Assembly: GCF_026571515.1 (NCBI RefSeq)
Contig: NW_026864227.1
Span: 1 to 64,000 of the forward strand
Direction of reading: 5' to 3'
Source: Ruditapes philippinarum
Taxonomy: Eukaryota
Length of the DNA stretch: 64,000 nucleotides
Made by a program: the position numbers and the translations under genes. The notes under the pieces were generated by a model. It made no database searches. It was not told the origin of the DNA and worked only from the letters and a program-made list of their open reading frames with translations. The first letter of the stretch is position 1. The number at the start of each line of letters is the position of its first letter. Of the stretch, positions 10,590-60,700 are shown one piece after another.

Positions 10590-11175
10590 AAAGTTAAAAG
10601 GTCAAATTTCTGCTTCAACTATTGATTTTTATTGTCTGGATGACACTGTCACACTAGGGTTAAAAATCGCACAAATGTGATTAAATGGGAGTTAAACCTA
10701 CAGGAGGCTGATGCTCTACCTTGACATCACATAAGCCATAAACCAACATGCTATTTCTTTATAACTTTGTAAATTCTCAAATCCTGTATACACGTAGTTT
10801 TGGGAATCGAAATGCTTAAATACTGTATTACATTGTGATTGCTGTCATTATGTGTAGCATTGGGAATGCTCTTCTCCTGTGTGACCTTTGATATGCTCTT
10901 GTCCTGTATAGCTTTGTGAATATTCTAGTTATGAATAGCTTTAGGAATGCTCTAGTCCTGTTTAACATTTGAAATGCTCTAGTTCTGTATAACTTTGGAA
11001 ATGCTTAAGTTACAATGTATGTATAACTTATTGAATGCTGTAGTCTTGATTAATTTTGGTAATGCTCTGATCCTGTACAGCTTTGGGAGTTCTCTAGCGC
11101 TACAGTGTTTCAGGAATGCACTGGTTTTTATATATTTACAGGTTGAAACTCTACTGATTATAAAAAGACAGCAAG

Positions 11176-12790: not shown

Positions 12791-15700
12791 GTAAGTTTTA
12801 AATATGCAATACATAGTTATGTTTTCTTCTTTTAAGCATGTGTTAATTTGGTTTTAAACAGTACAAAATAATTATACAGTCAGGACTCATTACAACGACA
12901 CTGTTGGTTCCCAAAAATATGTCAGTATATCGAATTTGTCAGTTTATTGAATTTCATCATTCATCATGTAATGATATGCTTATTCACTGGTATTTGAACA
13001 TTATGTATTTATATCTATAATAAACATCTATAATGAAAAACATTTTGTGTGTATGTGTTCACTTTATTATACACATTACATATCATACACATAATACATC
13101 ATAATAACTTTATTAAAATAATAACAACTAAAATGGTTTTAAAGTGCGCATCGGTTGAATGTTAAACTAACGCTCACTTCTGAAGTAGCGTGAGTGCATT
13201 CAGTAAGCTGCGAAGGGAGCGTAAAGATTGACATGAAAATAATAAAACTTTATAATATAAAAAACACATACAATGATAGAACTTCCTTTATATGAATTGA
13301 TTTCGTTTTTTGTTCAAAAGTTAAATTAGTCCGTTGACGTTTAGTTGAAGGTTCTGCAATTATTTTAATTAAAAAAGTCACAAGTTGGCAAGTGTAACAA
13401 AATTCAGCTGACAACAACACTTTGGTATTGTAATAAGGTATAACAATCAACTGACCAAGCTACAATACCTCTTTTAACACCTTGCTGCTTTTGTTCACGG
13501 CTCTATGACATGCGCGCTTGACTGACCAAGTGTCAGTTAAACGGGTACTGATTGTATAGAAAATAACACGTTTGGTTTCCCATTGTATTGTGTCGGAGTC
13601 GGAATACAAATTTTCCGTTATAAAGGATTATAATAATGTTGAAAAAATTTGGTTCCCACCAATTTACTGTCGTTATTTGAATTTGTCAGATGTATTGAGT
13701 CCTGACTGTATCTTGGTTAAAAAATTAAAGCAGTAGATAATATAATTTTATAATAAAAGTATGGTACATGTATTATGCTAAAAAATTGATTCATAAATAA
13801 TGTGTGTATGTATTTGTGTATTCCAGTGCATGTGTGTGTACTTGTGTATACAAGTGTGTGTACTAATGTGTGTTTGTGTGCCTTTGTGTACATGTATGTT
13901 AATGTGTTTGACTAGACGTGTATATGCCACTGTGTGTTTACTTGTGTATGTGATAATTGTCATTGTGTTTGTGTGTACTTTGGTATGCCACTGTGTTTTT
14001 GTGTTTGCCACTGTGTTTTTGTGTATGCCACTGTGTTTTTGTGTATGCCACTGTGTTTGTATGTTGTTGTGTATGCCAATGTGTACATGTGTATGCTAGT
14101 GTGTTTGTGTACTTGTGTACACCATAGTGTTTATTAACTTGTGTATACCAGTGTTTTTATGTGTATTTATATTATTGTGATGTAAGTATTATAATGCTGC
14201 CAGTGTAGGATAAAAGTCCCAATATCCCTGAACTGTCTTCATCGGTTCTACTTTTTCACCATCAAGGGGCTATGAGTCTTTCTCCCAGCTTTCACTGGGT
14301 TTTTGGATGTTATCTCCAAAACATCAGATAAGGGGCTTTGATTGATGGGCATTTGCACCTAGAATATTAGTTGCATATAAGTTAACATTGTCAGTGTTAC
14401 ATCCTTTAATTGTTGTTCTTTCTTCTATTTACTTAAGCATCATAGAATGATTGTAAAGGATGTTATATATCAACACTTTACCAAACTTTGTAGCTATCTT
14501 TTTTCTCTTTTCTGAGGTAAATTTCTAGCATCATATTGTAAACATAAGTAAAGTTAGCTGTCAACTCTAATAGCCCTATGTTTATATCTTTCAGGAGTCT
14601 CTTAGAATGTCAACTCTAAAGACAGAGGTTATTTCAATAAGCTTTGATGGGATTGAACAAATGTCAGATGGGTTCCTATTTAGTTTATTTCATTGTAAAC
14701 TTAACCTGAGTACAGTGAAATGGATCTCCTTAACAGGTAACTCATTTGTTGCGCAAGAAAATATATTTTATGTTCTAACAAGGATGATAATTGTGTATTA
14801 GAGCTGACAAATCTAAGATAAAATATGTTGCTTCTGCCAAATATTTAGAAAAAATGCTAAATAAATGCAAAATATAGAGAAACAGTGTGTAGTTACTGTA
14901 GTAACTGGCCATTATTGAGAAACAATGGGTAGTAATTGCTAGAAATACTGATTTAGCAATTTGTAATAATTGGCTATAAATGAGAAACACTTTTAAATAA
15001 ATGGCATTTTAATTGTGAACAAATGTGATTTGATTTGTATAAAGGTAAGTTGACAGTAAAAAGGCTTAGAAATTAGTTAATACATAGGTGGTTAGAAAAG
15101 CATACAAATAAATCAGATAATTTAAGCACATTTGAAGTCAAATTCATTCCATTAAAAGCTTAAGTCATACCATACCTGATATTTGCAGGAGCTATTGTTT
15201 CATTTTGTTGTCTTAGTTTTTGTGATATCTGTCTCACTTATGTTGAAAGAAGAAAGAAAAACAGTAATCTAAATATATATATTTGTATATTGTAGGATGT
15301 TATAACATGACAGCAGTAATCTAAATATATATATTTGTATTTTGTAGGATGTTATAACGTGACAGCAGTAATCTAAATATATATATTTGTATATTGTAGG
15401 ATGTTATAACATGACAGCAGTAATCTAAATATATATATTTGTATATTGTAGGATGTTATAACGTGACAGCAGTAATCTAAATATATATATTTGTATATTG
15501 TAGGATGTTATAACGTGACAGCAGTAATCTAAATATATATATTTGTATATTGTAGGATGTTATAACGTGACAGCAGTAATCTAAATATATATATTTGTAT
15601 ATTGTAGGATGTTATAACGTGACAGCAGTAATCTAAATATATATATTTGTATATTGTAGGATGTTATAACGTGACAACAGTAATCTAAATATATATATTT

Positions 15701-18700
15701 GTATATTGTAGGATGTTATAACGTGACAGCAGTAATCTTAATATATATATTTGTATATTGTAGGATGTTATAACGTGACAGATGAAGGTGTTTACTGGAT
15801 TTCTCAAACTTTCACAAACATTAAATCAGTAAGTGGTTTTTTATATGCATTCCTGAACCTTACATCCATAAGTAAACTAAAATCTGATTTTGATTGTGTT
15901 TGCTTTTTCAAACATTTCACAATAAAGTTTTTCTTTTGTTTTACTAAACCTGATATATCTATAAATTGTTGCAATTAACTTGCTTTCATAAGCCTTAAAG
16001 ATGAAGTCTTGAACCTCAAATCTGAAAACTACAAGTTTTATCTGTTAACATGGTTTCCTATACCTCAAATTTGAAACCTGTTTTTGTTTTGAAAGCTTAA
16101 AATCTCTATATTTTTTTTGCTTTCTGCAACAAATGGGCTTTTGTTTGTTATCGCTTTCCAAAACTTCAAACTGACCAGGCTTTGTTTGTTGTAGCAATCT
16201 CAAAATACAATATCGGAAGTTTTCATTAGCTTTCCCTCACCTCTAATACATGAGGTTTCATTTGCCGTTTCTGTCCCAAATTTCAATAATTTAGTTTTCT
16301 CGTGCTTTCTTGAACTGGCCATGAGTTTTTGTTTGCTTTCTCAGGTTTGTATTATGATGTTTTGTATGATGTTGCTTTCCCAAACCTTAGTATTAGAAGT
16401 TTTCTCTTGCTTTATCAAACCTCACACTCCCAATGAGTGTGCTCTGCATACAACACCCTATGTCAAATGTCAGCCTCGTCATTCATATCATTTTATTTAA
16501 GAAATGTTCAGTTTACTATCCAGCTAGTGATGCTGCTCCTCAGACAGTTTATGTTTTCATTATTTTCCAGTGAAACTATGTACAATCATTGAAATGTTAA
16601 TATTTTTCATTAACAATGCCCAGAACCACAGATAATCTGGTTATATACAATATGGTATCTACTGGTGACATATTTAAGGTACAAATATCAAAACACCATG
16701 ATAAATATGAACATATGATAAATATAAATATATGATAAATATGAAAATATGATAAATATAAATATATGATAAACATGAAAATATGATAAATATAAATATA
16801 TGATAAACATGAAAATATGATAAATATATGATAAATATGAACATATGATAAATATAAATATATGATAAATATGAACATATGATAAATATGAATATCTGAT
16901 AAATATGAAAATATGATAAATATAAATATATGATAAATATGAAAATATGATAAATATAAATATATGATAAACATGAAAATATGATAAATATATGATAAAT
17001 ATGAACATATGATAAATATAAATATATGATAAATATGAAATATGATAAATATAAATATATGATAAATATGAACATATGATAAATATAAATATATGATAAA
17101 TATGAAAATATGATAAATATAAATATATGATAAACATGAAAATATGATAAATATGAACATATGATAAATATAAATATATGATAAATATGAAATATGATAA
17201 ATATAAATATATGATAAATATGAACATATGATAAATATAAATATATGATAAATATGAAAATATGATAAATATAGATATATGATAAATATGATAAATATAA
17301 ATATATGATAAATATGAACATATGATGAATATAAATATATGATATGAACATATGATAAATATAAATATATGATAGATATGAACGTATGATGGATATAAAT
17401 ATATGATAAATATGAACATATACTGTGTTTTCAGATTCAGTTATCAGGATGTAACAAGATAACCGAGAAATCTATAAATTATTTGAAGAAACTATCAATG
17501 CAGGAAATTATCCTTGATGGTACAAACTGTGGGGTATTACCACTTGATGTAAACCTTGGACAAAACTTTCAGGCTAAACCTCATGCTCCAAGTATGTTAA
17601 TACAGTCAAATTTGATATATATAATGTTTATTATTGTAACACAATGTAGCTTTGTGTATATATTATAGTATATTTATAATTTCATAAATAAAAGGATGTT
17701 ATGCATCTTTTACACTACATAATTTGATAGCTGTATATTAAAAGAAATTCTATGTGATATTAGCTCTTTATATAGAAAGGAATGCCTTTGTTTTATTTAA
17801 TTACAATTTGTTGATGTCGTTTTATATAAACTGAACTTTCCATATGTTTGTTATTATATATTTTCAGGTGTAACTTTCAATGGCTGTCCTATGATGTCTC
17901 CAATGTTATCTGAAGTAAACAAGGAATCAGGCTACAAATCCTGGTCACCCGGCAACTTTCCAGGTAACTTTATACAACATTAGGAAAAAAACAGCTAGAC
18001 ATCAGTTTAGAAAAAAACATGATATCAAAGCAAACTGGTGACCATATAGTGTTATAATTTATTTCCATTTTTATCTATATTTTACTAATCTTATAACTGT
18101 ATTCCTAGAAATTATTTTGTCCTTTTTATGTAAGTGCTTTTTATGGTAGGGACATTTCCGCGAATATGTATAGCTGCGAATATGTTATTGTTTGGTAAAA
18201 GTACTATAGCAAATAATAAATATATTGATAAACAAATATCAATTAAATCTTAAAAAACAAATCACTACTGTACATTTGAAAAACCTTTTTCTCACCCATA
18301 AATGTTTATCATAAGAAGTCTTAATACTGTATTTTATCTCAGAATTTCATTTTACTTTAGGAGATACTTATTTTATTTTGATGTGCATAAATCTGAATAT
18401 CAAATGCAATTTTTTGAATATTTAATGTATTAAGTAAGAGACAATTATATTTTAATTACCCCTAATTACATTTTTGTAGTGTTCTCATTTTCAATAGTAT
18501 TACTACTTATTTTCACAAAACATTCAGTAAGAATATTGTTTATTGCAGCAACTCTAAGAAAATTGGTGATATTAACTCCAGAAAACCTACCATGGAATCC
18601 TCTAGCTATACTGACCAATGGTCAAGATATCACTGCAAAGTCTGGCCTGTTGTATAAACATAACTGGACACCTTTCAAGGACAACAAGATCAAAGATGTC

Positions 18701-21700
18701 AAGTCATCAGCTGAAATATTTAATGTGTTTCAGATTACAAGAGGAAAGGTAAGTACTTTACATCTAGTACTTCCCATGGTGTACTCTCCATTGAGTACTT
18801 CATTTCAGTACTGCACATGGAGTACTTTACATTGAGTACTTCCCTTCGAGTACTTCACATGGAGTACTACACATCAAGGTTTTTCCATTGAGTACTTCCC
18901 ATTTAGTACTTCACATGGAGTAGTTCCCATTGAGTATTTCATATTGAGTACTTCCCTTTGAGTACTTCACATGGAGTACTTCACATCAAGTTCTTCCCAT
19001 TGAGTACTTCACATGGAATATTTCCCATGGAGTATTTCACATGAAGTACTTCACATTGTTTACTCCATAAATATAAATACAAACATTCTGCAATGTATGT
19101 GATTATATTGTTTTGCTTGTAAACTTGTGATTGTAAACTTCTGCTTGCAAACTTGTGATTGTAAACTTCTGCTTGCAAACACTTGTCTGTGACTACAAAG
19201 CCCTGCTTACAAACACAAATGAAGACATTATTCTTAAGAATATGGTGCCAAAGATAGAAATAGTCCTAACAATGTCCTGACCTTACACAAGAGTATATAA
19301 TAGTCCTTTAAATGTCCTGACCTTAAATAAGAGTATATAATAGTCCTAAAAATGTCCTGACCTTAAACAAGAGTATATAAGAGTCCTAATAATGTCCTGA
19401 CCTTAAACAAGAGTATATAATAGTCATTAAAATGCCTTGACCTTAAACAAGAATATATATTAGTCCTAAAAATGCCCTGACCTTACACAAGAGTATATAA
19501 TAGTCCTAAAAATGCCCTGACCTTACACAAGAGTATATAATAGTCTTAGAATGTCCTGACCTTAAAAAGAGTATATAAGAGTCCTAAAATTGTCCTGACC
19601 TTAAAAAGGAGTATCTAAGAGTCCTAAAAATGTCCTGACCTTAAACAAGACTATATAATAGTCCTTAAAATGTCCTGACCTTAAACAAGAGTATAATTAT
19701 ATTAGTCCTAAAATGCCCTGACCTTACAGAAGAGTATATAATAGTCCTAAAAAGGCCCTGACCTTAAACAAGAATATATATTAGCCCTTACAATGTCCTG
19801 ACTTTCATCAAAAGAATATAATAGTTCTTACATTGTATTAACATTAAACAAGAACATGATGGAATAGTAACACATAGGTATCAGATGAGACTCTAAGGTT
19901 ATTTGATATGAGCGTGATAATATTTAGTAATGTATTTTTGATTATTTTCAGGGTTTGACAGAGTTGATCATGTCTCCAGGTAGCATTGTTATACTACCCT
20001 ACTATCTACACAAAGATATGCCGAAAGCCCCAGCTGCTGAACTGGCATATACCATAATATCAATCTTGTCTAAGGTCAGTTTCTTATAATTACGCTGAAT
20101 ATGAAAATATATAGTATTATATAAATATGAATTTTTTATACTTGCAAATTAAATAAATATGTAAATTTATGAGTTTAGTTACATTCTTTATTTTATCATT
20201 ATAAAATGACTGTAGTTTTGTTTGTGTACTTGTCACAGTATGATGACTGTAGTTTTGTTTGTGTACTTGTCACAGTATGATGACTGTAGTTTTGTTTGTG
20301 TACTTGTCACAGTATGATGACTGTAGTTTTGTTTGTGTACTTGTCACAGTATGATGACTGCAGTTTTTGTTTGTGTACTTGTCACAGTATGATGACTGCA
20401 GTTTTGTTTTGTGTACTTGTCACAGTATGATGACTGCAGTTTTGTTTGTGTACTTGTCACAGTATGATGACTGCAGTTATGTTTGTGTACTTGTCACAGT
20501 ATGATGACTGCAGTTTTGTTTGTGTACTTGTCACAGTATGATGACTGCAGTTTTGTTTTGTGTACTTGTCACAGTATGATGACTGTAGTTTTGTTTGTGT
20601 ACTTGTCACAGTATGATGACTGCAGTTTTGTTTGTGTTCTTGTCACAGTATGATGACTGCAGTTTTGTTTTGTGTACTTGTCACAGTATGATGACTGCAG
20701 TTTTGTTTTGTGGGGGATGAGTGATAGTAAAGACACTATTGACTATGAGCAGACAGTAAAGAAAATGCTGGAGAATGTAAACAAGTATTTTAACAAGTGG
20801 ATTGACAGACTTGATGGGTCTATACGTACAGCTATCCAGTATGTATCTTATATATTCATATACTGCTGTATCTTGAATTCTGCCATATTTTATCAATATT
20901 GTGTATATTTACACTTTGAATAATATTCTTTAACTGATAAATCTGTCAGCAATATATATATATATATATATACATGTAGGTAAATACATGTAGGTAAATA
21001 ATTTAAGCAGTAAGTACATTGACAAACTTTATTGCACTTCTTCAAGCCAAACAAACATTGACATAAACTCCTCACACATTTTACTGACTATTTGTTATCC
21101 TCTTTCAGGCATAAATCTTGTAACAGACCTAGAGTTAGGGTTATTATGATTTTATATGAATAATTTTCAGTACAAACTGGAGAATGGCAGCATTTAACTA
21201 TCTTGAGCAAGATTCCCTGTCACAGGGTGAGAAGATGCTGCGACACATGAGGTCATTGTTAAATCTTACAACCAGTTCTTTTGTAAGTTTATTTCTTATC
21301 TTGTCAGTGTTTCACACTTATTATATTCTCTCTTACTTTGGTGTGTTGTGTCACTTTTCTAATATGTGTACACCTTAATTATAAGTATAGAGACTCTTTT
21401 GTAATGTATATTTGTGCATGCCTTACTTTTTGTCCAATCTATAATTAGAGAATGCTTTAATCTACAGTCACCTGATTTGGTCATGACCAGAAGAGGGCCC
21501 ATATAAATTAAGAAAACAGGTGATCTGATTTGGTCATGACCAAAAGTGGGCCCATATAAATTAAGAAAACAGGTGACCTGATTTGGTCATGACCAGAAGT
21601 GGGCCCATATAAATTAAGAAAACAGGTGATCTGATTTGGTCATGACCAGAAGAGGGCCCATATAAATTAAGAAAACAGGTGACCTGATTTGGTCATGACC

Positions 21701-24700
21701 AGAAGAGGGCCCATATAAATCAAGAAAACAGGTGATCTGATTTGGTCATGACCAAAAGATGGCTATATAGATTGGGAAGTCTGGTGGAAACTGAAAAAAA
21801 TTTTTTTTTTAACTTTTGAAATTCCATAAGTGTTATTTATGAATTTATTATACCTGTGTTTGCATTATTCATGCACTGTTTATCTTCCCATTTCCCACTA
21901 CAGTTGTGAGTTACTGCTGCTGATGTTAGATGACAGGTTTATATAAACTATTGTTTGTTAATATTGATGTTTGTTAGTTAACTTTTTACTTTAATTGCTA
22001 TTTCTTACAGTATTTGAGTATTTGTTTGCCATTAAGTTGTTTTATATTTTGTATTACAGAAAGTTGGTGAGAAGTTGACCTCATCAGATTTGAGATTTCT
22101 GAGTGAGATAGTTGAATTAGATGAAACAAAATTTCCTTGGAACAGACAAGCAATGATGAGTGGAAAAGTTTGTACCATGTTTAATTTGTTTAACTTATCC
22201 CTGATGATCAAATATGTTACTTTATGATTTTGATTAAATGTATAGAAAACACATATAAGACGAATAAATAAATTTTGAGTTAATGTATAACATGAATGCT
22301 TACACAAACCCTTTTTGGTATTGAATTATGTATCATTTCACTTTGTAAAAGTTGAATACAAAAATTAAAATGTATGATAGCACACTTCATGTAGAAGTTA
22401 GAATATAGTGATAACACACTTCATTGATTATTGTAGGTGTTAGAATACATTGATAACACACTTCATTGATTATTGTAGATGTTAGAATACAGTGATAACA
22501 CACTTTATTGGTTATTGTAGATGTTAGAATACAGTGATAACACACTTCATTGATTATTGTAGATGTTAGAATACAGTGATAATACACTTCATTGATTAAT
22601 GTAGATGTTGGAATACAGTGATAACACACTTCATCGATTATTGTTGATGTTAGAATATAGTGATAACACACTTCATTGATTATTGTAGATGTTAGAATAC
22701 AGTGATAATACACTTCATTGATTAATGTAGATGTTAGAATATAGTGATAACACACTTCATTGATTATTGTAGATGTTAGAATACAGTGATAACACACTTC
22801 ATTGATTATTGTTGATGTTAGAATATAGTGATAACACACTTCATTGATTATTGTAGATGTTAGAATACAGTGATAATACACTTCATTGGTTATTGTAGAT
22901 GTTAGAATACAGTGATAATACACTTCATTGGTTATTGTAGATGTTAGAATATAGTGATAACACACTTCATTGATTATTGTAGATGTTAGAATACAGTGAT
23001 AATACACTTCATTGGTTATTGTAGATGTTAGAATACAGTGAAAACACACTTCATTGGTTATTGTAGATGTTAGAATACAGTGAAAACACACTTCATTGGT
23101 TATTGTAGATGTTAGAATACAGTAATAACACACTTCATTGGTTATTGTAGATGTTAGAATATAGTGATAACACACTTCATTGATTATTGTAGATGTTAGA
23201 ATACAGTGATAACACACTTCATTGATGTAATGTTAGTATGTTAGAACTATAGTTGATAATACACTTCATTATATGTAGTGTTAGAACAGTTAACACACTT
23301 CATTGATTAATGTAGATGTTAGAATACAGTGATAATACACTTCATATTAATGTAGATGTACAATACAGTAGATAACAGTGAAACACTTCATCGATAATGT
23401 AGATGTTAGAATACAGTGATAACACACTTCAAATTGATTATATGTAATGTTAGAATACAGTGATAATACACTTCATTGGTTATTGTAGAGTTTAGAATAC
23501 AGTGAAAACACACTTCATTGGTTATTGTAGATGTTAGAATACAGTTGAAAAACACACTTCATTGGTTATAGATGTTTAGAATACAGTAATAACACACTTC
23601 ATTGGTTATTGTAGGATGTTAGAATATAGTGATAACACACTTCATTGATTATTGTAGATGTTAGAATCAGTGATAACACACTATATTCGATTATTGTAGA
23701 TGTAGAATATACTTCATTGGTTATTGTGATGTTAGAATTACATGAAACACACTTCATTGATTAATGTAGATGTTAGAATACAGTGATAACACACTTCATT
23801 GATTATTGTAGATGTTAGAATATAGTGATAATACACTTCATTGATAAATGTAGGTGTTAGAATACAGTGATAACACACTTCATTGATTAATGTAGATGTT
23901 AGAATACAGTGATAATACACTTCATTGATTAATGTAGATGTTACAATACAGTGATAACACACTTCATCGATTAATGTAGATGTTAGAATACAGTGATAAC
24001 ACACTTCATCGATTAATGTAGATGTTAGAATATAGTGATAACACACTTCATTGATTATTGTAGATGTTAGAATACAGTGATAATACACTTCATTGGTTAT
24101 TGTAGGTGTTAGAATACAGTGATAACACACTTCATTGATTAATGTAGATGTTAGAATACAGTGATAACACACTTCATTGATTAATGTTGATGTTAGAATA
24201 CAGTGATAACACACTTCATCAATTATTGTAGATGTTAGAAAACAGTGATAATACACTTCATTGATTAATGTAGATGTTAGAATACAGTGATAACACACTT
24301 CATCGATTAATGTTGATGTTAGAATACAGTGATAATACACTTCATTGATTAATGTAGATGTTAGAATACAGTGATAACACACTTCATCAATTATTGTAGA
24401 TGTTAGAATACAGTGAGGAGCTGAAGAAATCAAGTATAAAACTGACAACAGTGTCTGATGTGCAAAACAAATGCAAGTTTAAAGGCCTTCCTGAAAGAAC
24501 ATATACAAATAACGTGGCAAAATTGTTGTCATATTCAACACTATGGGTATGTTTACACGTAACTTATTTTTAGGATTTAACTTTATCTTTCGTTACTGTC
24601 AAGTAATTCTTAAGCAAATGAATGCTGCTTGTATAGGTGAGTATTCCTTTGTTACTGTATCATATATAACATGTATATGTAGCATCCCTCTCTGAACGTC

Positions 24701-27700
24701 ATGTGTAATATTCATATCAAATAACCTGTTGATATTAAAAGATGTTATGATCAAGTCTTGTATAGACATGTTGTATGTTATGTTTGTATAGTTTCATGAG
24801 TTGACATTTGTTTTGTTGACAGGGACATAGTGTTTACTACCATGTATGTTATGTTTGTATAGTTTCATGAGTTGACATTTGTTTTGTTGACAGGGACATT
24901 GTGTTTACTACCCTGAGTTAGAGACTGCACCAGTTGTTACAGATTTCCAATTCTTAGCAGATATTATACAAAAATTGATGTTTACATCTGCACCTCAGAC
25001 ATGTGACATTCGTTGCCTTGGAGACAAAATACCTTGCTGGAAAAAACAGGATCTAAAAACAGTTTGGCCTGGAGCATCTGATGATGAAATTGTAAGTCAT
25101 CGATTGCTTAGATTATTGTTAAATATCCTTCAAACCAGCAATGTTTTAAAGTGAAAAAGAAACAGTTTGGTTCGTGTCATCATTTCTTACAGGTCATACA
25201 TTACATGTATAATGTTTGCGGTAACTTATATGTGATTAGTTCTATTTGAAATAATGCTTATCAGTTTACACTGTGATGTAAGTAAAGAAGCATTTTGTTT
25301 TTATTTATAGATGTTGTTGTTACGAGTTCTAGAGAAGCAAGGCATTTTGTTGACATTTGCAGTAGATCCATGGTGCAGTATACAGGATGTATCATACATC
25401 TTTGTCTTATATAAAGATTTACCAAGTGAAGCTTCAATGCTGGTAATCATTTGTTTACCTTTAATTTAACATGACTAAATTTGTTGTGAAATTGACCCAG
25501 CTTGGAATTTGAAAATGTTTTCAGCATTTTAAAGAGAATTCAGTATTAATATCTAAAATTGAGCATCCAAAAGTAAAGACACAAACATATAGGGCCTGGT
25601 CAGGCAGCAAACAAGTTAGGGCCATGCAACGCAAGTATAGGGCCTAGTCAGGAAGCAAACAAGTTAGGGCCAGGCAACACAAGTATAGGGCCTAGTCAGG
25701 CAGCAAACAAGTTAGGGTCAGGCAACACAAGTATAGGGTCTGGTCAGGCAGCAAACAAGTTAGGGTCAGGCAACACAAGTATAGGGCCTGGTCAGGCAGC
25801 AAACACATTAGGGTCAGGCAACACAAGTATAGGGCCTAGTCAGGCAGCAAACAAGTTAGGGTCAGGCAATACAAGTATAGGGCCTGATCAGGCAGCAAAC
25901 ACATTAGGGTCAGGCAACACAAGTATAGGGCCTTGTCAGGCAGCAAACAAGTTAGGGCCATGCAACGCAAGTATAGGGCCTAGTCAGGCAGCAAACACAT
26001 TAGGGTCAGGCAACACAAGTATAGGGCCTGGTCAGGCAGCAAACACATTAGGGTCAGGCAACACAAGTATAGGGCCTAGTCAGGCAGCAAACAAGTTAGG
26101 GTCAGGCAATACAAGTATAGGGCCTGATCAGGCAACACACACAAGTATGACCAGCTTGACTTCAGTTATAGCTTAGATTTTTTATTATAAGTACACACAA
26201 AGCGGAATTTTGTCTATGACACATTGAATAATATTTAGTATGAGTGGCTGGCTGATAATTTTTTTATCTTTTATTTCTGTGCTATACAATTAAATACTTA
26301 TGGAAGTACAGTTCCTTTAGAATGGTTAGCATATTTCAGTAAATGGGAAAAAAAACTTTACCTAATACAAAAAAATAAACAATGTTCCTATCATTCCATC
26401 AATGTATTACCCCAATATAAATGACTTATTCTTGAAGATAAATGGCTTTTCTTAATGCGTTTTTTGCAGATTAAAAATATTTTTACATTTACACTTTCAT
26501 TTTATAAATGAAAAAATAGGGAATATATCGAAACGGTTATGAGACCATTACAAGAAATGACGACATTACCTTCTTTGAAGTTATTATGTCCTGGGTAAGT
26601 TTTAATGTGTTTGATTATTTACAACCATAGATACAATCCACTTAAGTTTGAAAGTCCTCTGCTGTCAATAATAGAAGTTAAATCAAAAGTCTTCATATTT
26701 TGTAATCACCTCTCATAAAATGTACTTTTATTTGTTTTCTAGGAAGATTACTGGCCATTGACAAAACCTGATAAATTTGTTGAAAGGACAAAGTTTTACT
26801 TCTGTTGCCCAGGACTACCAGAATCATTCTTCCCAAACTTACTCAGGTGACTGTCTTTATTTCAAGATAAAATCTTTTTATTCATATTTATTTATACTTA
26901 TAGAAAACTTCTAGATTGTTCCTTTTGTTTTAATATAAGCTGTATAGCGGTAAAGATATCATCATAATATAAGCTGTATAGAGGTAGAGATATCATCATA
27001 ATATAAGCTGTATAGAGGTAGAGATATCATCATAATATAAGCTGTATAGAGGTAGTGATATCATCATAATATAAGCTGTATAGAGGTAGTGATATCATCA
27101 TATTATAAGCTGTATAGAGGTAGAGATATCATCATAATATAAGCTGTATAGAGGTAGAGATATCATCATAATATAAGCTGTATAGAGGTAGAGATATCAT
27201 CATAATATAAGCTGTATAGAGGTAGAGATATCATCATATTATAAGCTGTATAGAGGTAGTGATATCATCATGATATAAGCTGTATAGAGGTAGAGATATC
27301 ATCATAATATAAGCTGTATAGAGGTAGTGATATCATCATAATATAAGCTGTATAGAGGTAGTGATATCATCATATTATAAGCTGTATAGAGGTAGAGATA
27401 TCATCATAATATAAGCTGTATAGAGGTAGAGATATCATCATAATATAAGCTGTATAGAGGTAGAGATATCATCATAATATAAGCTGTATAGAGGTAGTGA
27501 TATCATCATAATATAAGCTGTATAGAGGTAGAGATATCATCATAATATAAGCTGTATAGAGGTAGAGATATCATCATAATATAAGCTGTATAGAGGTAGA
27601 GATATCATCATAATATAAGCTGTATAGAGGTAGATATATCATCATAATATAAGCTGTATAGAGGTAGAGATATCATCATAATATAAGCTGTATAGAGGTA

Positions 27701-48700: not shown

Positions 48701-51700
48701 CTCAATAAGGTTATGTGCAGAACCCATGTCTTAAGGTCAAGGTCACACTTGAAGGTCAAAAATTGACTTAGAAAATGTTCTTAAATTTTAACATATATCT
48801 GAATATTTCTGAATCTAGGAAAGGTATTTGCTTGAAACTTAAAATATATATGAAGTGTCACAATTAAGATATGCTGGTCAAGTTTCATAACTCTGTATTG
48901 CATTTTAACAAAGTTATGCCCCTTTTTAATCTTCAAATTTACATACAATCACATATTAGACAATATGTCGTGTCCGCTCTATAAATCCTATACTAATGGA
49001 AGAATTTTCTTCAAACTTTACTCAAATGTTCACCTAAACAAGGTTATGTGCAGAATCCATGTCACCTTTGTGCAGGCTAAAGGTCAAGGTCACACTTGAA
49101 GGTCAAAAATTGACTTAGAAAATGTTCTTAGATTTTAACATGTTCTTGAATATTTCTGAAACTAGCACAGGTATTTGCTTGAAACTTAAAAGATATGAGG
49201 TGTCACAATTAAGATATGAAGGTCAAGTTTCATAACTCTGTACTGCATTTTGACAAAGTTATGCCCCTTTTTAAGTCTTTAAATTTACATACAATCAATA
49301 CTAGACAATATGTTGTGTCCACTCTATAAATTCTATACTAATGGAAGGATTTTCTTCAAACTTTACTCAAATGTTCACTCCAATTGGGCGATGTGCAGAA
49401 CCCATCTTACCCTTGTGCCAGCTTAAGGTCAAGGCCACACTTGAAGGTCAAAAATTGACTTATAAAAATTTTAGTATATTGGGAAAATGAAAGGTTATTT
49501 GTAACTGTTTCGAACATGATTTGATAATAGATATTTTTACTATTACCTGTACAATGAGTCTTTTTTTCACCCGAGATAATTTCTTTTTATGTATTTGTGC
49601 CACTTAAGTTATTCCCTTAACCACCTTTCCAAGTCGTCTTCTGTCAAGGACATTGGTGGGGGTATGAATCGCATTCAGCGATAGTTCTAGTTTTACAAAA
49701 CTTCATTAAACATGTAAGTTAACTAAATGTTCTGACTATTTTAAGTTTATATCCCCTACCAAAAAGGTAGCAAGGAGTATGGTTATAGTCTCCTTCTGTC
49801 TGTCCATCTGTCTGTCTGCTTCACATTTTTGTCCAGAACATAACTGGAAATGTATTTGAGATGTCAACATGAAACTTCTGTAATTTTTGTTACTAGAGTT
49901 AGACTTGGATGATTGTCCATTACTGAAGACACCTCCACGTGAGATACGAGATAAAGGTTTTCACTCAACATTTGCATATCTACAGAGGTTGTTGAGTGGA
50001 GCAGTTCTCAGTAAAAGAACTAAACTAATGTTAGTGGGGCTTGGTGGAGCCGGGAAAACTAGGTATTTTTACATTACTACAAATCTTTTACTTATGTTTA
50101 CTGTAGGTATATATACATTACTACAAATCTTATCCTTATGTTTACTGTAATAACAAATTATAACTTTATATGAGAAAAACAGACACAGATGTAAATATAA
50201 ATATAAGCGGCTTTTATGCTGAAAGCAACTTAACATAAATATAACCTAGTTTCACACTGTATATACTTATTATATATCAAATATACTTTGATTATTGTTT
50301 TAATAATGATGTTCTGTAAATTATATGTTGATTTATAGTTTAGTGAAGGCTCTATTGAGTGAAGATGGTGTAGCTAAACTAAAGCAAGGGGAAGATATCA
50401 CTGATGGTAAGATTATTACATACAGTATACTTTTATCACTTTTGAAAATCTTTATTATTTAAGACTATGTTTCTATAGATCAGTTATTTATTAAAGGCAT
50501 GAGATAGGTGAACAACTCCTTTTTAGAGATGTCTGCAATATATTTCAGTCGTCTATGTCACTTTTTATGCAAAACAAAAAGTGAGAGATAAGTTTACTTT
50601 TGGTGTACTTCTGTATCCTTATATCTATGTATCTATATATATGACAGGTATTGTTAATAGGTTATATATTAAATTACAAGAATTGTTTATTGATTATATA
50701 TTACATTACAAGAATTGTTTATTGGTTATATATCACATTGCAATAATCGTTTATTGGTTATATATCACATTACAAGAATTGTTTATTGGTTATATATTAC
50801 ATAACAAGAATTATTTATTGGTTATATATTACATTACAAGAATTGTTTATTGGTTATATACTTTATTACAAGAATTATTTATTGGTTATATATTACATTA
50901 CAAGAATTGTTTATTGGTTATATATTACATTACAAGAAATGTTTATTGGTTATATATAACATTACAAGAAATGTTTATTGGTTATATATTACTTAACAGG
51001 TTTTGTTTATTGGTTATATATTACATTACAAGAATTGTTTATTGGTTATATATTACATTACAAGAATTGTTTATTGGTTATATACTACATTACAAGAATT
51101 GTTTATTGGTTATATATTACATTACAAGAAATGTTTATTGGTTATATATAACATTACAAGAAATGTTTATTGGTTATATATTACTTTACAGGTTTTGTTT
51201 ATTTGTTATATATTACATTACAAGAATTGTTTATTGGTTATGTATTACATTTCAAGAATTGTTTATTGGTTATATATATCTTTACAGGTTTTGTTTATTG
51301 GTTAAATATTACAGGTGCTGTTTATTGGTTATATAATACAGGTATTGTTTATTGGTTACATATTTTTTTACAGGTATTGTTTATTGGTAATATATTACTT
51401 TACAGGTATTGTTTATTGGTTATATATTACAGGTATTGTTTATTGGTTATATATTACAGGTATTGTTTATTGGTTATATATTACAGGTATTGATATTCAG
51501 ACATGGCAGGTGAAACATGAAGAGGAGAAGATAACATACAATATTTGGGATTTTGCTGGACAAACAGTTTACTATAATACACATCAGGTATTATTATATC
51601 AATGAATTGATGTGTGACAATACAGTATGCACTTTATTCATTTATCTATAAAGGTTTAAACAGTTTGTCAACAGAGCTTTATGACTACTGCGGTTATATT

Positions 51701-54700
51701 TTCAGTTTTTCTTGTCTGACAACAGAGCTATATAAAAACTGCGGTTATATTTTCATTTTTTTCTGCTTGCCAACATAGCTATATAAAAACTGCGGTTATA
51801 TTTTCAGTTTTTCTTGTCTGCCAACAGAGCTTTATATTTACTGCGGTTATATTTTCAGTTTTTCCTGTCTGCCAACATAGCTTTATAAAAACTGGGGTTA
51901 TATTTTCAGTTTTTCCTGTCTGCCAACTGAGCTATATAACTACCATGGTTATATTTTCAGTTTTTCCTGTCTGCCAACATAGCTATATAACAACTGTGGT
52001 TATATTTTCAGTTTTTCCTGTCTGCCAACATAGCTATATAACTACCATGGTTATATTTTCAGTTTTTCCTGTCTGCCAACAGAGCTTTATAAATACTGGG
52101 GTTATATTTTCAGTTTTTCCTGTCTGCTTGCCAACAGAGCTATATGACTACTGTGGTTATATTTTCAGTTTTTCCTGTCTGCCAACTGAGCTATATAACT
52201 ACCATGGTTATATTTTCAGTTTTTCCTGTCTGTTTGCCAACAGAGCTATATGACTACTGTGGTTATATTTTCAGTTTTTCCTGTCTGCTTGCCAACAGAG
52301 CTATATGACTTCTGTGGTTATATTTTCAGTTTTTCCTGTCTGCCAACATAGCTATATAACTACCATGGTTATATTTTCAGTTTTTCCTGTCTGCCAACAG
52401 AGATATATGACTACTGTGGTTATATTTTCAGTTTTTCCTGTCTGCCAACAGAGCTATAAAACTACTGCGGTTATATTTTCAGTTTTCCTGTCTGCCATCA
52501 GAGTTTTATAACTACCATGGTTATATTTTCAGTTTTTCCTGTCTGTGAACAGAGCTATAAAACTACTGCGGTTATATTTTCAGTATTTCCTGTCTGGCAA
52601 CAGAGCTATAAAACTATTGCAGTTATATTTTCAGTTATTCCTGTCTGCCAACAGAGTTATATAACTACCATGGTTATATTTTCAGTTTTTCCTGTCTGTC
52701 AACAGAGCTATAAAACAACTGCGGTTATATTTTCAGTTTTTCCTGTCTGCCAACAGAGCTATAAAACTACTGCGGTTATATTTTCAGTTTTTCCTGTCTG
52801 CTTGCCAACAGAGCTTTTATAAATACTGCGGTTATATTTTCAGTTTTTCCTGTCTGCCAACAGAGCTATAAAACTACTGCGGTTATATTTTCAGTTTTTC
52901 CTGTCTGCCAACAGAGCTATAAAACTACTGCGGTTTTATATTCAGTTTTCCTGTCTGCTTGCCAACAGAGCTTTTATAAATACTGCGGTTATATTTTCAG
53001 TTTTTCCTGTCTGCCAACAGAGCTATATATTTACTGCTATGGAACGTACGACTGGGGCATGAACATGCAGGATTAGATTTTTGGTTGAGCTCAATCTCTG
53101 TTCAAGCTCCAAAAGCTCCTGTATTTGTTATAGGAACTCATATAGATCAGGTGATTCTTGTGTATTCTTTATCTGTTTCACTTGTCAAGAAAATTACTTC
53201 TAAAGGTGCCAATGGCAATAATAGCATGTGAAAAAATTCACAGTGTCCATTACTAATATATTTATACATGTACTAGTACAAGAACATGATCAAGCATTCT
53301 TGTAGGGTTATGTTTATTGAACTTAATTTCTGTTAGATTTCCGATACCTGATAAATATTCTTAGAATAAATACAGCCAGTTGAAAGTTTTAAATGATAAT
53401 GTTACTATGTAAATGTTTTAAATGTGTTTATAATATAAAAGTTAGCATATAACATCATTGGATATACATGTATATAGTTGATATTAAGGCTATATATCAG
53501 TAATAAAAGCTTAAAATAACTTGACAATTTTAATGAAAGTTAACTTGTAGTTTTTTTGTTTCTTTGAGCTAGATATTAATTTATCTTTGTCAAATTTGTA
53601 TTGCTTAAAAAAACTATAAATAATGAACTTGTGTTAGTGACTGTATAAATGATGTATTACAGGTCAGCAAGTCTGAGCTACCACTAGAAGAAATGCAGCA
53701 AAGGTACCCGCAAGTGGTCGGCTTTCATTTTATAAGCTCATACACTGGACAGGTATATATTGATATTGCTTTAATGCTATATTCTATAGGTTCACATATT
53801 TTGATTGTTTAGCCAAACTTGAAAATAGTTATTTAAAGCAATTTTATCTCAATATTTTAAAGTCTTAAAGGTTCATGTTTGACAAGTTGACATGAAGTTT
53901 TCTTATATGCTGTTTTCAACATTTCATCATATTCTTTAGCAATATCATTATTATTGTGAACAATAACCTTGTTTACATGTATATTACTTGTTATCATAGG
54001 TAGTATTGTTGTTTCATGTACATTTATGTTTTTATTATACTCTGCATTGTTGTTATCATGCCGATTAAACTGCATTGTTGTTATCATGCACTTAAAAGTT
54101 GTTATCAAGCTCTGTGTTGTTATTATCATGAGCACTAAAGTTGTTATCATGCACTCAATTGTTGTTATCATGTACATAAAGTTGTTATCATTCACTAAGT
54201 TTTTGTTATCATGTACCTTAAGTTGTTATGTTGTTATCATGTAAATAAAGTTGTTATCTTAAGTGAAGTATGTTATATTTACAGGGTGTAAGTTCACTAA
54301 AGTCAAGTATATTTGATGTGACACTACAGCAACAATATATGGGTGAACATATACCAGCAGTATGGCTAACATTTGAGAATAACATTGAAGTGTGAGTCTT
54401 ATATCTTAAGGGCTAAACCTAACTTTGTTACTTTATATGCTTCAATATCTCTATAAATAGATATTACAGAGTTATTTTTGAGAGTTCTGTTAAAGTTTCT
54501 GTTAGTTCTTTTTCTTCATTTTGTTAACTTAGTTTGGTTACAAATAACTGTAATAGAATTCATCCATGTCACATTTAGTTTGGTTTATTTTTATATAAGA
54601 AACATTTTTGAAGTAATTTTTTATTTTCAATTTATTTTTATACATGAATGTAAAGGACAACATCAGATACAATATTAACATATGTGTGAATACAGGGCAG

Positions 54701-57700
54701 TTGGTACAATGTTTGCATTTTTATGTACAAAGGACAGTTGGTTGATACAATATTACACCTGTTTGTATAAAGTATGCTTGATGAAATATTTATAGAATCA
54801 AGAAGAAGAACGACATTGTGACATACAATGAGATAGAATTGTTAGCCAACAAATCTGGTATCTTTGAACCTTCTGAGGTAAGTCTCTTAGATAATGGTAT
54901 TTATCTGAGGTAAGTCTTAGATAATGGTATTAATGTGAGGTAAGTCTCTTAGATAATGGTATTAATCTGAGGTAAGTCTCTTAGATAATGGTATTAATCT
55001 GAGGTAAGTCTCTTAGATAATGGTATTAATCTGAGGTAAGTCTCTTAGATAATGGTATTAATGTGAGGTAAGTCTCTTAGATAATGGTATTAATCTGAGG
55101 TAAGTCTCTTAGATAATGGTATTTATCTGAGGTAAGTCTCTTAGATAATGGTATTAATGTGAGGTAAGTCTTTTAGATAATGGTATTAATCTGAGGTAAG
55201 TCTCTTAGATAATGGTATTAATATGAGGTAAGTCTCTTAGATAATGGTATTATTGTGAGGTAACCTCTTAGATAATGGTATAAATATATGATAAGGCTTT
55301 TAGATATGCAATGGTATTAATATGAGGTAAGTTGCTTAGATAATGGTATTGATATGAGGTAAGTCTTTTAGATAATGGTATTAATATGAGGTAAGTCTCT
55401 TAGATAATGGTATTAATATGAGGTAAGTCTCTTAGATAATGGTATAAATATGAGGTAAGTCTCTTAGATAATGGTATTAATCTGAGGTAAGTCTCTTAGA
55501 TAATGGTATTAATCTGAGGTAAGTCTTTTAGATAATGGTATTTTTGTGAGGTAACCTCTTAGATAATGGTATTAATCTTAGGTAAGTCTCTTAGATAATG
55601 GTATTAATCTGAGGTAAGTCTTTTAGATAATGGTATTTTTGTGAGGTAACCTCTTAGATAATGGTATAAATCTGAGGTAAGTCTCTTAGATAATGGTATT
55701 AATCTGAGGTAAGTCTCTTAGATAATGGTATTAATCTGAGGTAAGTCTTTTAGATAATGGTATTTTTGTGAGGTAACCTCTTAGATAATGGTATTAATAT
55801 GAGGTAAGTCTCTTAGATAATGGTATTAATATGAGGTAAGTCTTTTAGATAATGGTATTGATATGAGGTAAGTCTCTTAGATAATGGTATTAATATAAGG
55901 TAAGTCTCTTAGATAATGCTATTAATGTGAGGTAAATCTCCTAGATAACTAGATAATAATACTTTTGTCATTTGTTGTTTTACAATTTATTGTTAAAGTA
56001 TTTTTTGTCTAAAAATGCTGCTTGTTATGATGATGGTCTATTTCATTACTTTTTCAAAGATTTCAAACTGACAACTTTTTTAACATTTAAGGCCTATAAT
56101 TCAACCTGGAGAATTTTAAAAAATTTTCCTCTATATTAACTCAAATTTCTTTTTGCCAGATATTTCAAGCAGTTCAGTTTCTTCATGACTTGGGAAGTGT
56201 CCAACATTTCACAAATGAGTATTTAAAGTCTAATGTTGTGATAAATCCACAGTGGATTGTAGATGTGATGGCATGTGTAGTGTCTGTGAAAAATGATTTC
56301 ATTAAAGTAAGTGATCATTTATTGTTTTTACAGCATTGATATTATTATAAGCCAAGTTTGAAATTATGCTGTAGTAATGATATATTACGGCATAAAAATT
56401 TAAATATTGTATATAAAAATACTTATAATGATGAAATAAATTTCTTTAATTCTGATTGCCATAAACACTTTGTAAACTATGTTGTATATACTGTGAAGAA
56501 CCGAACCACAAACAAATAACAATATATTTCAACAACGTAGAAGGTTAACTACATGTGTGTATAAAATTTATTATTGAGTTTTGTTCTTTTATGGCATATT
56601 TCTTGTTTCAAAAGTTGTTACTTATTGCACATAGTAAGCATAGTCATTGAACGGCACCATTTTCATGTGCTTCCTCAGTATCAAATACAGTTGATTTTTT
56701 AGCTTATCTGAACTCTATATTCTGCTGGCAAAAAGTGTAACATTGTTTTTAATTTATAGTTATTAATAATTTCCTTTAACAAGAATCTTTATTGGTTTCT
56801 GAGTCATATTAAGGCTTGTTTTAAGATAAATTTTATTTATTGTAAAGAATGGTCGCCTTGTTCATGATGATATTGACAAGGTATGGAGTGCTTACCCAAA
56901 GAAACTAAGATCCTGGCTGCTACGACTTACTGAAGAGTTTGACTTGACCTTCCAGCTTAAAGATCAACCTGTCAACCTTGTACCATGTCTACTCCCAGAA
57001 AAAAAACCAGAGGTAGAAATGTTCAAATGTATATTTTTCTACCACATAGAAATATTGCAAACACTTTCATTCTTTAACCACATTTAAGGCCTCAACATGC
57101 ACATCACTTAGCAGATATATAAACAATGAATGATTAATCTGTTTCTAGATATTCTTGATTCATAAATACTTAATGTTAAAGATTTAAGGAAGGATAATTC
57201 TGCAAATGCTGACAGTGCTGATGTGTGAATAAAATTGAAGAGATTTAGACATAAATAATTGGTGAAGTAAAGTATTATATTTGTATAAAAGGCAAAAGAG
57301 ATTTATCCAGTATTTTTTCAAGTCTTCCAGTATATAATTTTGTATTACTTCATACATTTATTTAAATTAAGGTTCCAGCTTCACAGCTCAATACGTGTTC
57401 TAATGTGTATTTTATATTTATATTGTTTGACAGTTTACATGGCCTGAGATTGAGAGAGGTTCAGATATTAGGGAGAACAAGATGGTGTATACATTTGAGT
57501 ACCTCCCTGCTGGACTCTTCAACAGAGCACAAGTATGTTCTTTTCTGTACATAAACATAACAAGTAGATTTGTCCTTAATATTCTGTACAACTTTATTCT
57601 CTGTAATTCTTTGATATAGGTTTAACTTCATTCTCTGTAATTGTTTTATGTAGGTATAACTTCATTCTCTGTAGTTCTTTGATGTAGGTACGATTTTATT

Positions 57701-60700
57701 CCCAGTAATTCTTTGATGTAGGTATAACTTTTTTCTCAATTTTTTAATGTAGGTACAACTTTATTCTCTGTAGGTACAACTCTATTCTTTGTAATACTTT
57801 CATTCTAGGTACGACTTCATTCCCTGTAATTCTTTGATGTAAGTGTGATTATATTCTCCTTAATTCTCTGATGTAGGTGCAACTTTGTTTTCTGTTATTC
57901 TTTCATGTAGGTATGACTTTATTCTCTATAATTCTTTCATTCTAGGTATGACTTCATTCTCTGTAATTCTTTCATTCTAGGTATGACTTTATTCTCTATA
58001 ATTCTTTCATTCTAGGTAAGACTTCATTCTCTATAATTCTTTCATTCTAGGTATGACTTCATTCTCTGTAATTCTTTCATTCTAGGTATGACTTTATTCT
58101 CTATCATTCTTTCATTCTAGGTAAGACTTCATTCTCTGTCAGATAGTGCACTCATCTGGAAGAAAGGTTCTTACCTTATAAAGAATGTCCATGTTGCTTT
58201 ACTACAACATGTTAGGTATGTAAAATACTACATTAAATCTTATGTAACGTGTTATGGAAATACAACAATCTTATGTTCACATGTTAGGTATTGAAATACT
58301 ACATGCACTTATCAAGTAAATAAAAGTTATTGGCCCATGCTTGTTTAGATTTGTTTGAAAGTAGAACCCATGTTCCCGAACAATTCTCGATTTTGACTTG
58401 TCTCAATACATCAAGTTCCAGATTTGAACTGATGAGATTCACAATAACAAAACAAAAACCTGATGATGTCTATGTAAACATCTGTTGTCAGGTAAAGGAA
58501 TGCTACATATTGATACCATTTAAAACGTTTACAATATCTTAATTAATAAGGATTTAATATGTTTCTAACAAAAAACATAGTTTCATCCATGAAATTATGT
58601 CAATGTATAAACAGAGATTGTGAGATGGTTGTAACAGCTCAAGGACCAAGACCAGAGAATATCCTGTTTCTTATACATGAAGTATTTGAAGGTCTCATTG
58701 CAGAATCTTTCCATGGTGTGACGTATGATTTTACAATGCCATGCCCAGAATGCCAGGCAATGGTTAGTGGTAACTTTCAATTAATAATTTTTATATTAAT
58801 TTACCTTTAAATTATAGAATAATAAGTGTTCAAATTCAAAGTGTTGTTGTGCAAAGTGTTGTTGTCCAGTAAAACCAAACAAAACAACAAAATGATCAAC
58901 ATTTTTATGTCATTTTCTTTAAGTGTTTATGCTTTTCTTACAAGGTATTTCGGATGCAGTGCATCAGCATAAAAGACGAGATGTATATAAACATTAACAT
59001 TTAATGTTACATGACATTTATTAGAAACACAATTGTAAAATGTATTGCAGGCAGTGAAAGACCCGCACATGTTTGCAGCTTCAACAATACGTAGAGCACT
59101 GGACATGCAGGCTCCGTTCCTTCAGTGTATAAAATACTTCCATACTATCTCATGTTCTGCTCTTCAGAGTAAGTAGAAATAGTTTTAAGGTAATTCACCT
59201 ACTAACTTGTTGACCATGACATTATACCCTATATCATTCATCTGTATATCTGAGATTTTGATGTGTCTATGAAAGGTATATTTTGTGACCAAATGTTTAT
59301 GGTCAAAAAATAATTTAACATACAATTGCGCAACTTCAATAACTGTAAATATATGGGATTTTTTTTATTTTAGCATTGTTGCCACCAGACAGTCACTGAG
59401 AATTTGTGATTTATTTTATTTTAGCATTGTTGCCACCAGACAGTCACAGTGACTTTGATGCACAGTTGGTACAGTGTGTACAAGGACTCAAACATTTACG
59501 CAAAGATTTAGCTGCAGGTATGTTTTTTTTCTATCTACTCTTCTTTTTCTTTAATTTCTTTTATTTCTATAATTATTTAAACTTTGTTTAATGAAGTAAA
59601 TTATTTGGTAATCTGATCTCTCACCTTAGTCTCTCACCTTGATCTCTTAACTTTGTCTCTTACCTTTATTTCTCACCTTGATCTCTTACCTTGATCTCTC
59701 ACCTTTTTATCTCTTACCTTAGCCTCTTACCTTAGCCTCTTACCCTGATCTCTTACCTTGATCTCTAAACTTTGTCTCTCACCTTGATCTCTCACATTGG
59801 TCTCTCACCTTGATATCTCTTATTAGTCTCTGACCTTGATCTTTTTTCTGAATCTCTGACCTTAATCTCTTACCTTGATCTCTTACCTTAGCCCCTTACC
59901 TTGATCTCTTGCCTTGATATCTGACCTTGATCTCTTACCTTAGCCTCATACCTTGATCTCTTACTTTGATTTTTTACCTTGATCTCTAACCTTGGTCTAT
60001 CACTTTGATCACTCACAGTTATCTCTCACATTGATCTCTTACCTTGACCTCTCACCTTGATCTCTCTTACCTTGATCACTCACATTGATCTCTCACCTTG
60101 ATCACTTACCTTGATCTCTCACTTTGATCTCACACCTTGATCTCTCACCTTGATCTCTCACCTTGATCACTTACCTTGAGCTCTCACCGTGATCTCTTTA
60201 TTTGATCTCCTACATGTATTAGTTACATCATAATATTTCTCTGAATCCATATTTATACATTTTCCTTTCAGTCTAATAAATGTGTTTTTTTATTATTTCA
60301 GATATATTTATTTCATATTGTGGTAAAGATAATCTATTGAATAAATCTTCCTTCATTGTGCCATCCAGAGTTCACAGTGACCTTGTAAATAAAGGATACA
60401 AGTGGTAAGTAAATGTTGGATACCATACTGGTTGTTCTACATCAAAACATTGAGCATTTAAGCTCATTTAATACAGCATGTAGTCTATAGTTTAATACAT
60501 GTATAAATTTGTAAACTTTTTTTTGTTGGCTTCTTTAGAATATCTTAATGTTAACTTGAGTATATTTCATAACCAGAAGTGCTCTATATTTTATAGTAGG
60601 TTACAACTAGACTCATAGATAAGGGATCAAAATGTCACATGATCACTGTTACAATATTGTAAGAGATTTATTTAACCTATTTAACTTATTGAATTGTTAT

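Follow-up and report, generated by a model that had tools for sequence, protein, structure and literature searches.

Analysis of positions 1-64,000 of contig NW_026864227.1 of Ruditapes philippinarum (referred to below as the window) showed a single gene in which 18 splice junctions are overlapped by tandem arrays whose units contain the splice site. The arrays are mirage-type minisatellites, a phenomenon that has already been named. The preferred explanation, to which a probability of roughly 0.65 was given, is that the gene is a local hot spot for minisatellites in which short duplications arose, were expanded and were tolerated. The window, from an assembly of 1.41 Gb with about 30% GC, was selected for its striking look, and 157 N at about 3.4-3.6 kb were kept unchanged.

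The host gene lies on the forward strand, as do the arrays described below, from 14595 to 63425, and runs past the end of the window. It contained at least 48 exons and is a large immune-type gene of the ROCO type (LRR, Roc GTPase, COR-A, COR-B and two TIR regions) with an LRR-Roc-COR-TIR architecture. The 48-exon model was built by linking open-frame anchors via the best frame-compatible GT...AG pairs; all 47 introns were GT-AG, and the 6807 nt (2269 codons) contained no stop. A collinear paralogue was found on contig C9764 at 36.9-90.9 kb. Codon-by-codon comparison showed that many exon starts and ends were positionally matched between the two genes, which supports the exon edges on grounds other than the repeats. 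At seven junctions (24894, 32209, 40386, 51487, 53001, 58121 and 59425) the paralogue showed the exon part of the repeat unit to be coding.

Tandem arrays inside the gene

Arrays were called with Tandem Repeats Finder (TRF), and small duplications were identified with a separate repeat search. Between the first and the last modelled exon, TRF showed 36 arrays, 14 of which contained a splice site (11 acceptors and 3 donors, the latter at 40371, 50060 and 54872). Four small duplications were added by the separate search, two at acceptors (33141 and 59351) and two at donors (32198 and 58207), giving a total of 18 junctions. A sequence-only reading of the window had proposed about 20 junction arrays in one gene, and its large arrays were all recovered by TRF and its two-copy arrays by the repeat search. 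The splice site was present in 13/13 of the proposed acceptor arrays, checked against the 48-exon model, and in 5/7 of the donor arrays. The array proposed at 31470 was absent, with only a 22-nt repeat at 31521/31561 downstream of the donor at 31484, while the other non-conforming one (14 nt x22, 18752-19056) abuts a donor, starting at intron position +4 with the GT outside the array.

The junction arrays were head-to-tail and minisatellite-sized; their periods lay between 27 and 80 nt and their copy numbers between 2 and about 105. A unit holding the splice site, usually with the exon edge, had been described, and in 17 of the 18 units the AG or GT was indeed accompanied by 3-37 exon nt; the unit at 45020 had none. 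As had also been proposed, the units were mutually unrelated (best local score of donor against acceptor units, 15.5), and three units tested had no other occurrence anywhere in the assembly, in keeping with a local origin. Among 23 units, no common core motif was found beyond a weakly over-represented TATAA, which was present in 12/23 units against 9 at the 95th percentile of a shuffle that did not preserve dinucleotides.

Within-array identity ranged from 66 to 98%. Internal variant structure was present in the form of 31/33-nt and 27/32-nt subfamilies and of 112- and 187-nt super-periods, and a divergence gradient along the array was seen at 34627 and 50650 only. That the arrays were inflated or invented by the assembler is hardly credible: the assembly holds no second haplotype contig of the locus for comparison, but the subfamilies and super-periods, the spread of identities and the intact exons between arrays all speak against such an artefact.

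On the acceptor side, the array at 15262-15781 (52 nt x10, 98% identity) had units of 34 nt of intron end with AG followed by 18 exon nt, with the exon starting at 15764. The array at 20206-20708 (37 nt x13.6) carried 22 exon nt per unit relative to the acceptor at 20687, a site that rests on the model and has in-frame alternatives at 20663 and 20753. The array at 22390-24416 (42 nt x48) consisted of 25 nt of intron with AG and 17 exon nt and ended at the acceptor 24400, while the duplication at 24772-24912 (71 nt x2, 19 exon nt, acceptor 24894) opens an exon whose start is shared with the paralogue. Further upstream-extending arrays were found at 28588-30088 (40 nt x37.5, 19 exon nt, acceptor 30070) and at 38413-38810 (33 nt x12, 9 exon nt, acceptor 38802), and the duplication at 33141-33250 (55 nt x2, 76% identity, 25 exon nt, acceptor 33226) was older.

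The largest array occupied 34627-38012 (31/33 nt, about 105 copies, 5 exon nt, acceptor 38008), and the similarity of its units to the exon-side copy rose from 70-76% distally up to 94% proximally. Variant units in this 3.4-kb array, at 37960-38012, read CAG|G|GTATGT, with a donor-like hexamer one base past the acceptor. The array at 45020-45625 (27/30 nt x22), in an intron without a counterpart in the paralogue, ended within the AG of the acceptor 45627 and held no exon bases. Two subfamilies made up the array at 50650-51492 (acceptor 51487, 6 exon nt, exon start shared with the paralogue), namely an older 32-nt subfamily with the AG mostly lost and a younger 27-nt subfamily (51258-51492) with CAG|GTATTG, whose decoys were open and in frame. 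The units at 51669-53037 (51 nt x27, acceptor 53001) combined a short intron end of about 15 nt with 36-37 exon nt, and the paralogue supported FFLS.NRA.YLLLW as coding. The last two acceptor arrays were at 57586-58139 (35 nt x16, 19 exon nt, acceptor 58121), which filled 94% of its intron and whose unit, with TAG|GTAWGA, is donor-like as well, and at 59351-59452 (51 nt x2, 90% identity, about 23 exon nt, acceptor 59425).

The five donor arrays (32198, 40371, 50060, 54872 and 58207) held the GT with 3-16 exon nt. The 40-nt unit at 32198-32797 comprised 12 exon nt followed by GTAGTG and was present twice at the junction (donor after 32209) and twice more at 32711-32797. The array at 40371-40931 (80 nt x7) had 16 exon nt, GTAAGT and 58 nt of intron per unit, with the donor after 40386 and an exon end shared with the paralogue. 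A 44-nt duplication (x2, 3 exon nt) was present at 50060-50149 with the donor after 50062, and an array of 32 nt x34 with 6 exon nt and GTAAGT at 54872-55948 with the donor after 54877. At 58207-58296, an 18-nt segment containing the donor (after 58215) had a second copy 72 nt downstream.

Arrays of the same style were also present away from the junctions. A distance of more than 30 nt from every junction was found for 15/36 arrays, for example at 25588-26141 (48 nt x11.5) and 26931-27847 (34 nt x27). Four long arrays ended 3-15 nt from a splice site with the core signal spared: besides the array at 18752-19056, that at 16698-17421 ended 13 nt before the acceptor 17435, and those at 30219-30652 and 38892-39742 were 15 nt and 14 nt past a donor, respectively. 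The proposal that deep arrays are transposed copies of junction arrays was rejected, with the copies at 32711 alone fitting it. Intron 29 contained a satellite at 48133-49467 (169/345 nt) with translated similarity to 164-nt satellites in the paralogue locus (C9764, 56.8-57.5 and 65.4-66.1 kb), and this shared similarity places it in a dispersed family and sets it apart from the local minisatellites.

Origin of the arrays and their association with junctions

The locus itself is the real oddity. Arrays covered 46.5% of the stretch from 15.0 to 60.3 kb, compared with 7.7% and 4.4% of the flanks. When arrays with periods of 10-100 nt were considered, the gene had 1.2 arrays per collapsed kb and 41% cover, against 0.28 and 4.2% in a background of 110 kb around 30 kinase loci, which amounts to about four times the array births and about ten times the array cover. 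No junction arrays were found in the paralogue, where the repeats were mostly satellites of 140-346 bp that are taken to be transposon-derived, and 21 dynein exons with their flanks contained at most one small donor duplication. Junctions with arrays made up 18/94 in the gene and 1/42 in the dynein set (Fisher P = 0.007). A background of 30 kinase and 21 dynein loci is too small for a genome-wide junction test. A 20-nt duplication (x2) with donor-like GTAAAT and GTAAGT follows a dynein heavy-chain exon at L055:1700-1760 and is a candidate for a further small junction duplication outside this locus.

Under the preferred explanation, tandem duplication would have struck genomic stretches of 13-80 nt independently at many sites of the gene. 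Slippage during replication or unequal exchange would then have enlarged the arrays, the largest to about 105 copies. Before this expansion the introns would have been short (collapsed median about 400 nt), and a duplication of 30-80 nt would often have straddled a boundary. Such straddling would be tolerated, as one copy stays on the exon and the extra copies fall on the intron side, which would produce the apparent polarity. We infer from this that the mechanism acted at the level of DNA, that tolerance depended on use of the proximal site and that the link to junctions is mostly geometric.

Tandem duplication at the DNA level was favoured because the units were collinear with the genome, deep arrays were of the same style and junctions were blunt. 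The blunt junctions were seen as whole-number copy counts in the three cleanest arrays (15262, 24772 and 26931), the only ones whose ends could be read for microhomology, and they speak against slippage between sizeable direct repeats at this locus. RNA-templated repair, which the sequence-only reading had suggested, would have copied the units from splicing intermediates or cDNA and is highly improbable. The intron share of the acceptor units (14-52 nt) is close to the spacing usual between branch point and acceptor, a likeness that is not specific to such an origin. The intron-exon joints, on the other hand, were exactly those of unspliced DNA, the arrays deep in introns were alike, and reading of the unit consensus sequences by eye, without a dedicated search, showed no joint between exons. 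Free 5' exons or lariats would not yield units that cross a junction.

For the association with junctions, events and not bases were counted, each array being collapsed to one unit before random placement. Collapsing reduced the median intron from 694 to 404 nt, and the probability that a duplication of 30-80 nt straddles a junction of its own intron was then 10-55%. Junction overlap is therefore frequent by chance in introns of this length. Median unit length was 38.5 nt in spanning and 20.5 nt in non-spanning arrays, which matched the geometric prediction. The polarity of the arrays, which had been offered as a clue to mechanism, is forced by this geometry: of the copies made by any tandem duplication across a junction, one remains on the exon body and the rest fall on the intron side, and polarity is for that reason uninformative on mechanism. 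Geometry alone covered roughly a third to half of the junction pattern. In the gene-wide null, 4.65 junction-spanning arrays were expected and 13 were observed (P = 2e-4). Claims of junction-directed mutation need a null of this kind, with arrays collapsed to one unit.

Several results weigh against the preferred explanation. The own-intron null gave 7.05 expected and 14 observed (P = 0.003), and in the strictest count, with 20206 and 45020 taken as non-spanning, 12 were observed (P = 0.025). Beyond geometry there was thus a residual excess of two- to three-fold, which is fragile. Acceptors outnumbered donors by 11:3 in TRF, or by 13:5 once the small duplications were counted (P = 0.06-0.10). 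An exon share of 17-19 nt was present in 5/13 acceptor arrays (15764, 24400, 24894, 30070 and 58121), tighter than uniform break points would yield, although this was noticed post hoc. No explanation was found for the hot-spot status of the gene, and both the choice of splice site and the correctness of the assembly are assumed.

The same figures bear on a mutational process aimed at exon boundaries, through breaks or stalled forks at splice sites with RNA polymerase pausing or R-loops, or through meiotic breaks in the nucleosome-free pyrimidine tracts of intron ends. The residual excess and the acceptor bias agree with such a process, as does the finding of 21/36 arrays within 30 nt of a junction where 13 were expected. 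It is nevertheless considered unlikely, as the window was picked as striking, 15 arrays lie deep in introns, and no more than one small junction duplication was seen in the paralogue and the 21 dynein exons together. The significance of the excess depends on ancestral intron length: the own-intron test gave P = 0.04 with introns 30% shorter and P = 0.29 with introns 50% shorter, so that the excess vanishes at half the present non-repeat intron length. The focus on exon boundaries proposed in the sequence-only reading is accordingly no more than weakly indicated, and enrichment over random placement held inside the gene (P = 2e-4 to 0.003) as a modest effect that was lost at the shortest introns. 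A related view, also tentative and of low probability, is that the lineage resembles amphioxus in an acceptor-biased seeding of duplications at exon-intron boundaries, with some genes as hot spots. If boundary seeding were true, the gene would offer a natural experiment in which up to about 100 identical splice sites compete.

Decoy splice sites and comparison with known systems

The sequence-only reading had foreseen near-identical decoys, up to about 100 per junction, and this was borne out. In seven acceptor arrays the AG was kept in 10/10 (15262), 13/13, 40/44 (22390), 34/34 (28588), 97/98 (34627), 12/12 and 25/26 of the copies, and the GT was kept in 7/7 (40371) and 29/29 (54872) copies of two donor arrays. 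Frame analysis of the copies showed that use of a decoy almost always leads to a frameshift or a stop, the exceptions that are open and in frame being the 27-nt array at 51487, one copy each at 38008 and 45627, and the donor copy 58287. The exon-contiguous copies yielded an open, paralogue-like frame. Since nearly all decoys break the frame, correct mRNA would require the exon-contiguous copy, which is the last in an acceptor array and the first in a donor array, and mis-spliced products are candidates for nonsense-mediated decay. In the arrays at 57586-58139 (AG|GTAWGA) and 51258-51492 (AG|GTATTG), use of a decoy acceptor would regenerate a donor, a layout through which recursive splicing could return to the authentic site. 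Provided that the animal really carries the arrays, the right site would have to be chosen at 18 junctions among up to about 100 near-identical intact copies, and the gene would be a natural model for rules of proximity and exon definition, as a wrong choice would nearly always be visible as a frameshift.

Maintenance of the arrays by selection, with copy number setting the balance of productive and decay-bound mRNA or slowing splicing, is very unlikely. The near-complete preservation of decoy AG and GT and the early stops given by most decoys are in line with it, but intact decoys are just as expected where arrays are young or have been homogenised (86-98% identity). Nor was there any frame constraint on unit lengths, and the paralogue manages without such arrays.

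The sequence-only reading knew of no named description of such arrays, but they are known as mirages from amphioxus (PMC3087553), and the human F7 gene provides a donor-side example (PMC1557585). Mirages are minisatellite-like tandem duplications in amphioxus whose unit spans an intron-exon boundary (PMC3087553, PMC3902484). They have been described in the globin genes BflGb6 and BflGb9 (PMC3087553), in PGBD5 (PMC3902484), in troponin C and, in Canestro et al. 2002 as cited in PMC3087553, in Adh3. Splicing was undisturbed by them, and their mechanism of origin was termed unclear (PMC3087553, PMC3902484). As in amphioxus, both 5' and 3' boundaries are hit in the present gene, many copies keep the AG or GT, several arrays can occur per gene, and the edges of clusters escape homogenisation; the amphioxus units are 10-160 bp. 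The present gene differs in having up to about 105 copies and 18 affected junctions, and its genome, at 1.4 Gb and 30% GC, does not resemble that of amphioxus. Normal splicing and length instability have been shown for the amphioxus mirages. Text searches of the literature did not find mirages in molluscs, and arrays confirmed in the animal would extend mirages from cephalochordates to a distant genome.

The 37-bp variable number tandem repeat (VNTR) in intron 7 of human F7 has a first element that spans the exon-intron boundary, and experiments showed that scanning from 5' to 3' picks the most upstream donor, which is the only one used (PMC1557585). The arrays at 40371, 54872 and 50060 are alike in having a true donor followed by identical pseudo-donors. 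Unlike the F7 repeat, which is a single locus of few copies with experimental evidence, the arrays of the present gene are mostly on the acceptor side.

The birth of introns from tandem arrays or from internal duplications has been reported by Rogers 1989, Zhuo et al. 2007 and Gao and Lynch 2009, as cited in PMC3087553, and the mirage model proposes that tandem copies with splice signals can turn into new exons or introns. The present arrays are similar in placing copies with splice signals inside a gene. Unlike in the Rogers and Zhuo introns, the donor and acceptor of one intron were never in the same repeat family, and even in the intron nearly filled by the array at 57586 the donor lay 54 nt outside the array. 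Three introns that are absent from the paralogue showed no sign of origin from duplicated exon sequence. An origin of the introns from tandem arrays was rejected, the donor and acceptor units being unrelated.

Classical hypervariable minisatellites turn over rapidly, are built of units of 10-100 bp with internal variants, form locus-specific hot spots and are typically GC-rich and near recombination hot spots. Unit size, internal variants and a hot-spot locus are shared with the present arrays, which differ in being AT-rich (about half of the units with TATAA) and restricted to one gene body.

Host gene, paralogue and upstream frames

When the exons of the host gene were searched singly, Pfam matches were obtained to LRR_8/LRR_4, COR-A, COR-B and TIR_2, and the Roc GTPase motifs GLGGAGKT, DFAGQ and THID were read by eye in other exons. 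A phmmer search with the longest exon matched LRR proteins of a generic kind and, beyond these, just three fragments of one exon each (P0006, P0013 and P0074). The LRR region is split by three introns (43828-44511, 44710-45626 and 45747-46630) where the paralogue has one continuous exon (C9764:69363-69980); the fragments P0006 and P0013 stop at the start of the intron 43828-44511, and P0074 reads through it. The reverse case was also found, with an intron of the paralogue at about C9764:59647-60083 falling within the single host-gene exon 40201-40386. The exon 47046-47178, which separates the LRR block from the Roc domain, contained an EF-hand-like stretch, DENSNGVLDIKEIGKL, and had 62% identity to the paralogue.

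Upstream of the modelled gene, a 45-nt array (x5.4) at 11164-11616 lies inside an open frame of 151 codons and gives the repeated peptide VLPVVQSQAMALDSG. This frame is followed, also upstream of the modelled gene, by a proline-rich open frame at 12227-12490.

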